Source of the DNA: Guillardia theta CCMP2712
Lineage: Eukaryota; Protista; Cryptophyta
DNA: 64,000 nt
Direction: 5' to 3'
Assembly (NCBI RefSeq): GCF_000315625.1
Contig: NW_005434608.1
Coordinates: 254,018 to 318,017, forward strand
Part shown: positions 57,254 through 58,747 of the stretch, piece by piece
Numbering within the stretch: the first letter of the stretch is position 1
Layout: every line of letters begins with the position of its first letter
The notes under the pieces: generated by a model
The model's input: only the letters and a program-made list of their open reading frames with translations
The model's database searches: none
Told to the model about the DNA's origin: nothing
Program-made: the position numbers and the translations under genes

Positions 57254-58747
57254 TACGGATGCAAGCACTGCAGGGAGCGACCTGGAGAAGGCGACGTGGA
57301 GCAGGAAGGCGAAGGGAAAGATCAAGGGGAGAGGATGCCGAAGAATGAAGAGGGGGAGAGAAATCAGGAGGAGGAGCAAAAATTGAGAGAATCAAATGAC
57401 CGAAAGGAAAGAGCTTGGGAGGAAAGACCCGGGGAAAGAGACCGGCAGCTTGGAAATGTGGCCAAAGAATCAGATCATTGGAATCTGCGATTAGACGAGT
57501 TACGCAAGGAGAGAGAAGCAGAGGAGCAGCGACGGAGGGAGAAAGCCAGCAAGCGAGATCTCGTCTCTCAACAGGTGGAGCAAGTTAGTTCAGGTGCGTT
57601 GGGTTTGACGTCTCTTGCATCTCAGGTGGGCGGCATAAAGCAGGTAGACTTTTGGCAGTTCACTGGGATGCGGCAAGTCGGCTCGGGGTCCTTCAAGCTC
57701 GTCTACAAGGCCCGTTGGCTACAGAGCCAGAGGGAGAGCCAGGTCGTGGCGATCCTCCGAATCCGAGGAAGCGGATCCTTTGGGAACAACGAGGAGTTCG
57801 AGAAGGAGTTGCAAATCTTTCAGCAGCTCGGCCGCCATCCCAACCTCTTGCGCCTACTCGCTGTCACCATCGATCCGGCCTCTGGCGACAGCTGCCTCGT
57901 CACAGAGTTCGCGCCCAAGGGTTCTCTCGATATCATGCTGTCCGAGTTCGCCGAGAAGCAGGAAGCTGTCAGCCTGCTTGTGCAGCTGCAGGTGGCGAAG
58001 CAGATCTGCGACGGGATGGTACAGCTCTCGCTGCATGACGTTGTGCATCGAGACCTGGCAACGAGGAACGTGCTTGTCTTCAGCCTCGACGTGCGCGATC
58101 ATCTCGGTGTCTGCGTCAAGATCGCTGACTACGGGCTTTCCATCGTCGCCTCCCGAAGGCAAGGAGAGGGTCAGGGAGCGAGCGTCAGCACAGCAGGGAC
58201 GGCAGCTCGGCCGGTAAGGTGGATGGCGCCTGAGAGCATCAGGAGGAGGCAGTACTCGGAGAAGAGCGACGTGTGGTCCTTCGGCGTTACCATGTGGGAG
58301 ATCTGGACGCATGCTGAAGTCCCTTACGGCGCTTGCACTGATGACGCGGCGCTGGGATGGAAGGTGGTGGAGGGAGAGCGGCTTCCTCCTCCTCCAGATT
58401 GTCCTGCGGCAGTCTACACCATCATGCGGGAATGTTGGAGGGAGAATAAGCACGAGCGTCCGAGCTTCAGAGATTTGCAGCGAAAGCTCCAAGAGCAGTA
58501 TGATGAAGCTGTCGCACGGCGATCGAGACAGGGAGAGCCCAGGGAGTGGGAGCGGGAAGCAGAGCAAGGCGGAGAGTCTGAGCAAGTAGGAGTGCAGCAC
58601 TGCGTCATCTGCTTGGAAGGGAGGGCTGACTGGGCGCTGGTTCCCTGCGGTCACAAGTGTCTCTGTCAAGTCTGCCAGGAGGGAGCGGCGGAGAGGCCAT
58701 GCCCGATGTGTCGCTCCATTCCCAGCAGCGTCTGTAAGATTTACTAG
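57254..58747 (+). CDS. Protein kinase with tyrosine-kinase motifs and a C-terminal C3HC4 RING
   Basis: GSGSFKLVY, HRDLATRN, KIADYG, RPVRWMAPE, SDVWSFG, CPAAVYTIMRECW..RPSF; RING CVIC..PCGHKCLCQVC..CPMCR. Possible upstream micro-exons 57067-57096 and 57162-57197. Confidence 0.92.
   Translation, partial: YGCKHCRERPGEGDVEQEGEGKDQGERMPKNEEGERNQEEEQKLRESNDRKERAWEERPGERDRQLGNVAKESDHWNLRLDELRKEREAEEQRRREKASKRDLVSQQVEQVSSGALGLTSLASQVGGIKQVDFWQFTGMRQVGSGSFKLVYKARWLQSQRESQVVAILRIRGSGSFGNNEEFEKELQIFQQLGRHPNLLRLLAVTIDPASGDSCLVTEFAPKGSLDIMLSEFAEKQEAVSLLVQLQVAKQICDGMVQLSLHDVVHRDLATRNVLVFSLDVRDHLGVCVKIADYGLSIVASRRQGEGQGASVSTAGTAARPVRWMAPESIRRRQYSEKSDVWSFGVTMWEIWTHAEVPYGACTDDAALGWKVVEGERLPPPPDCPAAVYTIMRECWRENKHERPSFRDLQRKLQEQYDEAVARRSRQGEPREWEREAEQGGESEQVGVQHCVICLEGRADWALVPCGHKCLCQVCQEGAAERPCPMCRSIPSSVCKIY

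Follow-up and report, generated by a model that had tools for sequence, protein, structure and literature searches.

We analysed a stretch of 64,000 nucleotides (nt) of the Guillardia theta CCMP2712 genome (contig NW_005434608.1, positions 254,018 to 318,017 of the forward strand; hereafter the window), and in it a plus-strand gene whose product joins a protein kinase domain to a C-terminal RING finger. In the DNA the gene appears as a stop-free open reading frame (ORF) at 57296-58747 (+) of 483 amino acids (aa), with an N-terminal stretch rich in Glu, Arg and Lys followed by the kinase domain and the RING. This ORF is not the mature coding sequence: transcripts drop an in-frame intron of 51 nt and extend upstream, leaving the kinase domain untouched, and the full product of 620 aa consists, from N- to C-terminus, of a Cys-rich region, a charged segment rich in Glu, Arg and Lys, the kinase domain and a RING of IAP type. 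No further kinase copies were found inside the window. The domains and motifs on which the argument turns are the following:

57668..58489, plus strand: protein kinase domain of tyrosine-kinase type (PF07714, 2.8e-67; residues 125-398 of the 483-aa ORF).
57680-57706, plus strand: Gly loop GSGSFKLVY, with the Lys codon at 57695-57697 in the place of the third Gly (K271 in the 620-aa protein, K104 in the 453-aa isoform).
57746-57760, plus strand: beta-3 strand VAILR, with the Leu codon at 57755-57757 in the place of the canonical Lys.
57806-57808, plus strand: alphaC Glu, which matches the alphaC Glu of EGFR in the alignment.
58046-58069, plus strand: catalytic loop HRDLATRN.
58127-58135, plus strand: DYG replacing DFG.
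58208-58234, plus strand: P+1 loop and APE motif, RPVRWMAPE.
58595..58720, plus strand: C-terminal RING finger, C3HC4, of IAP/CGRRF1 type, followed by the last 8 residues of the protein (..CKIY).

The original prediction, made from the letters, had claimed a Gly loop in which Lys replaces the third Gly, a beta-3 strand with Leu where the invariant Lys should be, and the motifs HRDLATRN, DYG and RPVRWMAPE; all of these are confirmed. In HMMER alignments to EGFR, JAK and EphA3 chains the Lys aligns with the third Gly of GxGxxG, and the Leu with the Lys of VAIK, two canonical features of tyrosine kinases (TKs) that are thus replaced here, and neither the HMMER nor the MAFFT alignments place a canonical Lys in beta-3. 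An AlphaFold2 model of kinase and RING (mean predicted local distance difference test score (pLDDT) 91.5, predicted template modelling score (pTM) 0.81) makes the Lys the first residue of strand beta-2, with the Leu inside beta-3 and the Glu inside helix alphaC. A Lys at the third Gly of the Gly loop and none in beta-3 is the lysine layout of WNKs ('with-no-lysine' kinases); in WNK and POMK a beta-2 Lys replaces the beta-3 Lys (PMC13519141, PMC10211241), and WNKs are Ser/Thr kinases (PMC10211241).

In contrast to this lysine layout, the domain as a whole resembles tyrosine kinases. The Pfam model PK_Tyr_Ser-Thr (PF07714) scores 227 bits against 117 bits for Pkinase, the best sequence matches in the PDB are EGFR, JAK, Eph, Abl and ITK (E 1e-37 to 1e-73), and the top 50 Foldseek matches are EGFR, JAK2 and FAK, with template modelling scores (TM-scores) by target of 0.78-0.90; all top PDB sequence and fold matches are tyrosine kinases. 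Two signatures of the TK group, HRDLATRN (of the HRDLAARN type) and RPVRWMAPE (Px[KR]W[TM]APE), are present and conserved across the clade described below.

Relatives were recovered by three word-based searches that used the window protein, a family profile and a choanoflagellate member. We call K-type those sequences that combine a Gly-loop Lys with a beta-3 residue other than Lys, and canonical those that combine Gly (or Ala) at position 55, the third Gly in PKA numbering, with a beta-3 Lys. Among the 302 proteins covered by a pairwise tabulation, 76 were K-type and 143 canonical, and the K-type members have L, Q, I, M, V or A at the beta-3 position and in no case K. Because the same pair of states recurs in 76 fetched homologues, against 143 canonical ones, the motif states of the window protein exceed chance, as judged by these alignments. 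MAFFT columns split cleanly between the two types (28 of 28 K-type against 38 of 38 canonical), as they do in a larger alignment (52 of 52 K-type against 49 canonical) that has one further row, P0201, in which both states are lost. There is no credible mixed state among the fetched relatives; a few pairwise rows read as Gly with non-Lys or as Lys with Lys, from two-domain proteins of JAK/TYK2 type, look like alignment shifts, and we read them so because the sampled MAFFT columns are clean, the rows themselves not having been rechecked singly. Thus the co-occurrence of Gly-loop Lys and beta-3 non-Lys, which the original prediction had proposed to look for in paralogues, holds in every paralogue and orthologue examined, while its framing as a peculiarity of a single gene has to be given up: the lysine swap would be the ancestral state of a large and widely distributed family tied to E3 domains.

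K-type members are found in the cryptophytes Guillardia theta (at least 12 paralogues), Hanusia phi, Rhodomonas abbreviata and Baffinella frigidus, in the telonemid Telonema subtile, in the choanoflagellates Stephanoeca diplocostata and Diaphanoeca grandis, in the green algae (prasinophytes) Pyramimonas obovata and Tetraselmis sp. and, via the 90% cluster of P0210, in the chrysophyte Dinobryon divergens; many marine metagenome contigs are also K-type. Mallomonas annulata probably has a K-type member too, counted outside the 76, with a beta-3 strand without Lys and a Gly loop that did not align. Records from a single taxon may stem from transcriptome contamination, yet the members are mutually divergent.

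Once the three trait columns (position 55, position 72 and the Phe of DFG) had been taken out, a careful maximum-likelihood tree of 66 kinase domains united the K-type sequences in one clade (ultrafast bootstrap (UFBoot) 96, Shimodaira-Hasegawa-like approximate likelihood ratio test (SH-aLRT) 83), and a single change suffices in 97% of the bootstrap trees. In a quick tree of 102 rows, a clade with an SH-aLRT of 97 unites all 52 K-type rows with P0201 and the canonical sequence P0226, and the monophyly of the K-type rows without P0226 is not rejected by an approximately unbiased (AU) test (p 0.49, difference in log-likelihood 0.7). Since the K-type rows form one clade and their monophyly is not rejected, a single ancestral relocation of the lysine would be the simplest reading. 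DYG occurs throughout the RING-bearing subfamily and DFG in most members with a U-box, the Asp being invariant, and because of this distribution we take the Tyr of DYG to be a later, correlated change. The K-type clade lies among kinases with TK motifs and apart from two outgroup sequences that resemble tyrosine kinase-like (TKL) kinases, with little resolution along the backbone.

The second constant of the family is its E3 domain. The RING of the window protein scores 40.2 bits with zf-C3HC4_3 (PF13920; cutoff 27), has eight zinc ligands in C3HC4 spacing (CVIC..PCGH..CQVC..CPMC), and matches CGRRF1 (7.5e-09), MEX3C, cIAP1/2, XIAP, MUL1 and MGRN1 in the PDB; it is a predicted E3 ligase of the zf-C3HC4_3 (IAP/CGRRF1/MUL1) type. 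Among 75 K-type proteins, 29 have a C-terminal zf-C3HC4_3 RING and 26 a U-box (55 of 75), and most of the others are fragments, while no RING or U-box is listed for canonical relatives among the matches of the three word-based family searches. The architectures vary around this core: C-type lectin, ephrin-receptor-like, kinase and RING in P0132, whose close relatives have a hydrophobic stretch before the kinase; ubiquitin, kinase and RING or U-box; TPR, kinase and RING in Telonema; and ankyrin or armadillo, U-box and kinase. RINGs of the IAP and MDM2 type dimerise, and by analogy that of the window protein may do so as well. A kinase and a ligase coupled in cis would be the most economical functional model.

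How strongly the catalytic residues are conserved bears on whether these kinases work. The K-type clade has a tree length of 25.7 substitutions per site, and 12 of about 270 columns are invariant across its 52 rows; these include the Gly-loop Lys, the sole invariant column of the N-lobe, together with the HRD His, the catalytic-loop Arg, the DxG Asp and the APE Glu. In an alignment of 75 members the invariant columns are K271, G346, H388, R394, D415, E450, D462 and E472 (P0321 numbering). Over the 52 rows the His and an Arg of the catalytic loop are invariant, the HRD Asp is kept in 49 and the catalytic Asn in 51, and the alphaC position holds Glu in 51 and Asp in 1. The window protein itself keeps both the HRD Asp and the DxG Asp, so that of the K/D/D triad only the beta-3 Lys is gone. 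The idea that another beta-3 residue, Lys or Arg, compensates for the Leu was considered and rejected: the Arg three residues past the Leu in beta-3 (VAILRIR) matches a K/R that is usual in tyrosine kinases (VAVKTLK), and elsewhere in the N-lobe no column other than the Gly-loop Lys is invariant in the K-type clade.

A layout that does not vary throughout a large family of protist proteins points to a domain that probably works as a kinase and is not dead. We therefore favour, with a probability of roughly 0.6, an active kinase that uses the beta-2 Lys, is convergent with WNK and POMK and is coupled to an E3 ligase. The claim of the original prediction that the WNK solution evolved independently on a TK/TKL scaffold is supported by all three computational checks that it named, the affinity of sequence and fold being to tyrosine kinases, and is tempered in one part, as catalytic competence is argued from conservation.

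Under this reading, the catalytic Lys would have moved once, in the common ancestor of the K-type sequences, from beta-3 (VAIK) to the third-Gly position at the start of beta-2, reaching independently, on a TK-type scaffold, the position of the WNK Lys. From there it would reach into the cleft and pair with the conserved alphaC Glu and the phosphates of ATP, supporting phosphotransfer by an intact HRD/Asn/DxG machinery. The substrate would probably be tyrosine, as HRDLAxRN and PxRWMAPE suggest. We further propose that the kinase and the E3 domain joined to it, a RING here and a U-box in the sister subfamily, work together in cis, so that phosphorylation (of itself or of a substrate) and ubiquitination might be coupled in one polypeptide; dimerisation through the C-terminal RING would favour trans-autophosphorylation. 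The full scenario, in which an old TK-type clade present in several protist groups constitutes a second, independent 'with-no-lysine' lineage of eukaryotic protein kinases (ePKs), active via its beta-2 Lys and hard-wired to a RING or U-box, is one to which we would give slightly better than even odds. That the vacated beta-3 site might serve as a regulatory ion or ligand pocket, as in WNKs, is a speculative extension by analogy and a long shot.

It should be noted that several observations weigh against an active, independently derived tyrosine kinase. The activation loop of the window protein, SVSTAGTAARP, contains Ser and Thr and zero Tyr, unlike most autophosphorylating tyrosine kinases. 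In the K-type family, Ala, Ser or Asn frequently takes the place of the loop's first Gly, a degeneracy that suggests a remodelled nucleotide pocket, and conservation of HRD and DxG also occurs in some pseudokinases that bind nucleotides. In the trees, P0226 (an ENA metagenome sequence of 528 aa), which has a long branch, is the sole canonical sequence inside or beside the K-type clade, and may be either its closest canonical relative or a sequence that is a revertant or misplaced. Finally, the outgroup for placing the clade with TK or TKL kinases is thin, as it consists of the two TKL-like sequences, both long-branched; because of this and of the weak backbone, 'TK-type' seems a safer label than 'member of the holozoan TK group'.

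One alternative keeps the activity and changes the substrate: the protein could be an active kinase specific for Ser/Thr, or of dual specificity, despite its TK-type motifs. The Tyr-free activation loop fits this idea, and to our knowledge the classical networks of phosphotyrosine readers and erasers are thought to be sparse in the lineages that carry the K-type family. There is also a precedent in the Lmr family, which lies in the TK clade and, according to a review, shows Ser/Thr activity (PMC8662651). Against it, HRDLAxRN and Px[RK][WY]MAPE, the motifs that set tyrosine kinases apart from Ser/Thr kinases, are conserved across the clade, and the nearest sequences and folds are all those of tyrosine kinases. 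We consider Ser/Thr or dual specificity possible but doubtful.

A second alternative is that the domain is a pseudokinase, which would carry out no phosphotransfer, with or without residual nucleotide binding, and would serve the RING or U-box ligase to which it is joined as a regulatory module or as one that docks substrates; conservation of the Gly-loop Lys would then have a different cause, for instance structure, the sensing of nucleotides or use as a modification site. By the sequence-based definition, under which at least one of the beta-3 Lys, the HRD Asp and the DFG Asp is lost, the domain formally counts as a pseudokinase, as WNK does. The frequent degeneracy of the first Gly is in keeping with such a role, as is the constant E3 partner, which could be the sole catalytic part, and HRD or the Asn is clearly lost in some paralogues. 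However, between 49 and 52 of the 52 divergent members retain the HRD Asp, the Asn, the DxG Asp and the Glu residues of alphaC and APE, and the Lys is invariant exactly where the catalytic Lys of WNK sits, a pattern expected for an enzyme and not for a scaffold. We regard the pseudokinase explanation as unlikely. The original prediction had also supposed that automated pipelines would call the protein a pseudokinase, which is not borne out, as UniRef names a Guillardia paralogue 'Non-specific protein-tyrosine kinase'.

Individual members have nonetheless decayed. The HRD Asp, the catalytic Asn or, in P0201, the Gly-loop Lys is lost in the Guillardia paralogues P0012/P0135 and P0014 and in P0201, P0214 and P0216, and in P0012/P0135 (HRG), P0014 (HRE), P0214 and P0216 the decay affects several sites at once. 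By their sequences these members are likely true pseudokinases derived from a K-type ancestor. Such paralogues show the effect of relaxed selection, and their decay at several sites together is what would be predicted if the remaining members are under selection for catalysis.

A third explanation holds that the protein is a divergent member of the WNK family that has the relocated lysine by common descent and not by convergence. WNK kinases replace the Phe of DFG (DLG, where the window protein has DYG), and have a catalytic loop HRDLKxxN as well as autoinhibitory and CCT-like domains. The position of the Lys is identical and the Gly-loop strings are alike (GxGSFKxVYK). This likeness of GSGSFKLVYK to the WNK loop, however, needs one Gly-to-Lys change, because the Gly loop of EGFR in the same HMMER alignment reads GSGAFGTVYKG. 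PF07714 far outscores Pkinase, the catalytic loop is HRDLATRN and not of the Ser/Thr type HRDLKxxN, and Pfam finds kinase and RING alone in the 483-aa ORF and the 620-aa protein, with no autoinhibitory or CCT-like region. We also considered an N-lobe of WNK origin grafted on a TK C-lobe, and rejected it, as the 95-residue N-lobe alone matches EGFR, ITK and Tie2, and that search brought up no WNK within its 60 best matches. Together, the Pfam, PDB sequence, fold and N-lobe searches place the protein outside the WNKs, as the original prediction had anticipated, and make WNK membership extremely improbable.

Among the systems known to us, the WNKs offer the closest parallel to the lysine. In WNK1-4 the beta-3 Lys is absent and the catalytic Lys sits at the third Gly, PKA position 55 (PMC1821047), which is K233 of WNK1, the very position occupied here. 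A survey of 2007 regarded WNK as the sole functional ePK family without K72 (PMC1821047). WNKs differ from the window protein in being Ser/Thr kinases, whereas the latter has TK-type motifs, TK relatives and folds and a RING, and has no WNK accessory domain. In POMK (SGK196), too, the Lys that positions ATP has moved to beta-2, and the protein was once classed as dead and is in fact active (PMC13519141, PMC10211241); unlike the window protein, with its intact HRD, Asn and DxG and TK-type scaffold, it is a glycan kinase of the secretory pathway in which HRD and DFG are replaced (MCD, DLD). The CAK-chloro family of choline/aminoglycoside-like kinases has lost the charge at position 72 and gained a basic residue at position 55 (PMC1821047), but it is a bacterial-type family resembling small-molecule kinases, has Arg and not Lys, and is no TK-type ePK. 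The classical tyrosine kinases EGFR, JAK, Eph, Abl and TNK1 are the best matches in sequence and fold (30-38% identity) and have HRDLAARN, PxxWMAPE, DVWSFG and CWxxxxxxRPxF in common with the window protein; they differ in the lysine, as the 143 canonical relatives keep Gly (or Ala) at 55 and the beta-3 Lys, and in having no listed E3 domain. Kinase-E3 fusions exist elsewhere, namely the RING-kinase KEG of Arabidopsis, the plant PUBs that combine kinase and U-box, and MEKK1 with a PHD/RING-like domain and a kinase. These are Ser/Thr or TKL kinases with, as far as is known, a canonical beta-3 Lys, and their domain order and RING type differ from those of the window protein.

A literature search, to which the Monosiga kinome (Manning 2008) and a pseudokinase survey (Kwon 2019) did not belong, turned up neither a TK-type kinase whose Gly loop carries the Lys nor the K-type kinase-RING/U-box family; an earlier mention in those two works is possible. 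What appears to be new is the combination of an independent route to the WNK solution, another scaffold and an E3 partner that is fixed. Lysine relocation is the textbook example of why a kinase should not be declared dead on its sequence alone, and a third independent case, if true, would mean that the beta-2 solution is recurrent and accessible and not a one-off. The family would also provide a natural experiment on the changes that must accompany relocation, such as Phe to Tyr in DFG and a first Gly that becomes Ala. The occurrence of a TK-type lineage far outside Holozoa is relevant to how tyrosine kinases arose, and the recurrent fusion of kinase and E3, including receptor-like forms with lectin ectodomains, resembles a receptor tyrosine kinase with a built-in Cbl.

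The locus holds a genuine gene that is spliced and expressed. It is almost certainly a nuclear gene of Guillardia theta, as proteins of its 90% cluster and many paralogues bear the label Guillardia theta CCMP2712. Four public runs supplied the reads and contigs mapped to 55400-59400; transcript assemblies from two studies (contigs X1 and X2) have GT..AG joints that remove 57198-57253 and 57575-57625, raw RNA-seq reads span the 3' end of the gene, and a DNA-type run is collinear with the window at the locus. A decaying pseudogene or an assembly artefact with chance substitutions, to which the public gene model, a 266-aa fragment (P0001), might lend some colour, is refuted by spliced transcripts of independent studies that match the locus exactly, by a frame open through kinase and RING and by the same states in 76 K-type proteins from many taxa, and has next to no probability left. 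Three isoforms are confirmed by transcript-derived MMETSP proteins: P0322 (453 aa), the exact translation of 57335-57574 plus 57626-58744; P0323 (502 aa), which begins in an alternative exon at 57067; and P0321 (620 aa), which begins at the ATG at 54759 and holds all Cys-rich modules. The exons and introns are as follows:

54759..54785, plus strand: first coding exon of the long isoform (MPWSCLRCK); the N-terminus of P0321 matches the ATG ORF, and a GC donor comes next.
54972..55010, plus strand: coding exon ITVAFCTEESSKC, equal to P0321 residues 10-22, flanked by AG and GTAAGT.
55343..55429, plus strand: Cys-rich module exon 1, ATFDDGGDGRCRICSKDVRYHRAEFKVCD; joint 55429>55524 (GT..AG), pattern scan, and tblastn with P0321.
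55524..55613, plus strand: Cys-rich module exon 2 (..RCMMCSKPQKDHDSCFGICN); contigs X1/X2, pattern scan, and P0321.
56053..56139, plus strand: Cys-rich module exon 3, ATFKPGEEGKCMICSKLEKYHYQNKRYCN; contigs X1/X2, and P0321 residues 89-117 at 100%.
57067..57096, plus strand: coding exon MWDFKQPHQN, an alternative start used by the 502-aa isoform and part of the alternative exon 57005-57096; joint 57096>57162, at lower depth.
57162..57197, plus strand: coding exon CAKARGWQEYDQ; joints into 57162 and 57195>57252; P0321 and P0323.
57198..57253, plus strand: intron of 56 nt, GT..AG; joint 57195>57252 (cut +2), depth 671 in X1 and 35.7 in X2.
57254..57574, plus strand: coding exon with the end of the Cys motif (YGCKHCRERP) and the Glu/Arg/Lys-rich region; the ATG at 57335 opens the 453-aa isoform.
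57575..57625, plus strand: in-frame intron of 51 nt, VEQVSSGALGLTSLASQ if retained; joint 57571>57623 (cut +3), contigs of two studies.
57626..58747, plus strand: last coding exon, with kinase, linker, RING and stop codon; the transcript continues to about 58864.

The end of the first of these exons was inferred from the point at which P0321 switches to the next exon, and the N-terminal start of P0323, MWDFKQPHQNCAKARGW, supports the alternative first exon. Upstream, the frame is open via exon 57162-57197 into the three Cys-rich exons of about 29 aa. The genomic ORF seems to start at 57296 because the intron at 57198..57253 ends in an in-frame stop, TAG. The 51-nt segment at 57575..57625 is missing from P0322, P0323 and P0321; this intron is in phase 0 and free of stops, so that without splicing the DNA forms a single long ORF, 17 residues longer, and an ORF-based annotation would include these residues unnoticed.

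The N-terminus consists of Cys-rich modules of about 29 aa, one per exon, at 55343-55429, 55524-55613, 56053-56139 and 57162-57290. They have the form C-x2-C-S-K-x4-H-x6/7-C-[ND], each stops exactly at a GT donor, and the series closes with a CxxC-x13-CxxC motif that is common to Hanusia homologues (P0011 and P0016) and whose first half is encoded by exon 57162..57197. No Pfam match was obtained for the modules, searched as single exons and as residues 1-150 of P0321, and from their pattern they are probably a zinc-binding repeat for which Pfam has no model.

Two in-frame segments of the mRNA, of 12 nt (AERN) and 33 nt (EHTNSYCYCCN), concern the introns at 55614-56052 and 56140-57161. Transcript contigs from two studies contain both, as do MMETSP proteins. 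Not a single 10-mer from the two segments is present in the 64-kb window, whichever strand is read, and a contig of the DNA run is collinear with the window across this intron region. A third piece, AYF, probably of 9 nt, lies in P0321 between exons 54972-55010 and 55343-55429. The two unplaced segments could be micro-exons located elsewhere, come from a second identical locus or reflect an assembly problem.

Three further MMETSP proteins, P0133, P0324 and P0325, are identical to the gene until about residue 297 of the short isoform and then switch to the paralogue GUITHDRAFT_64450 and on into the caspase (Peptidase_C14) protein GUITHDRAFT_146145. They are most likely chimeric assemblies across conserved paralogue sequence, the alternative being a real kinase-caspase paralogue. 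In the 3'-untranslated region, 58810-58845 looks like a dispersed repeat: the DNA-type run reaches a depth of about 2500 there, against about 4-7 around it, many short contigs leave on both sides, and a G>T variant lies within it at 58834. Just past the transcript end, 58884-59017 is GC-rich with nested inverted repeats (e.g. 58873-58891 and 58897-58915) and its depth is zero in every one of the four runs, also in the DNA-type run, which does reach its flanks. Further downstream, the plus-strand neighbour at 59295-62817 (ORF from 59295) is expressed, with transcript contigs from about 59091.

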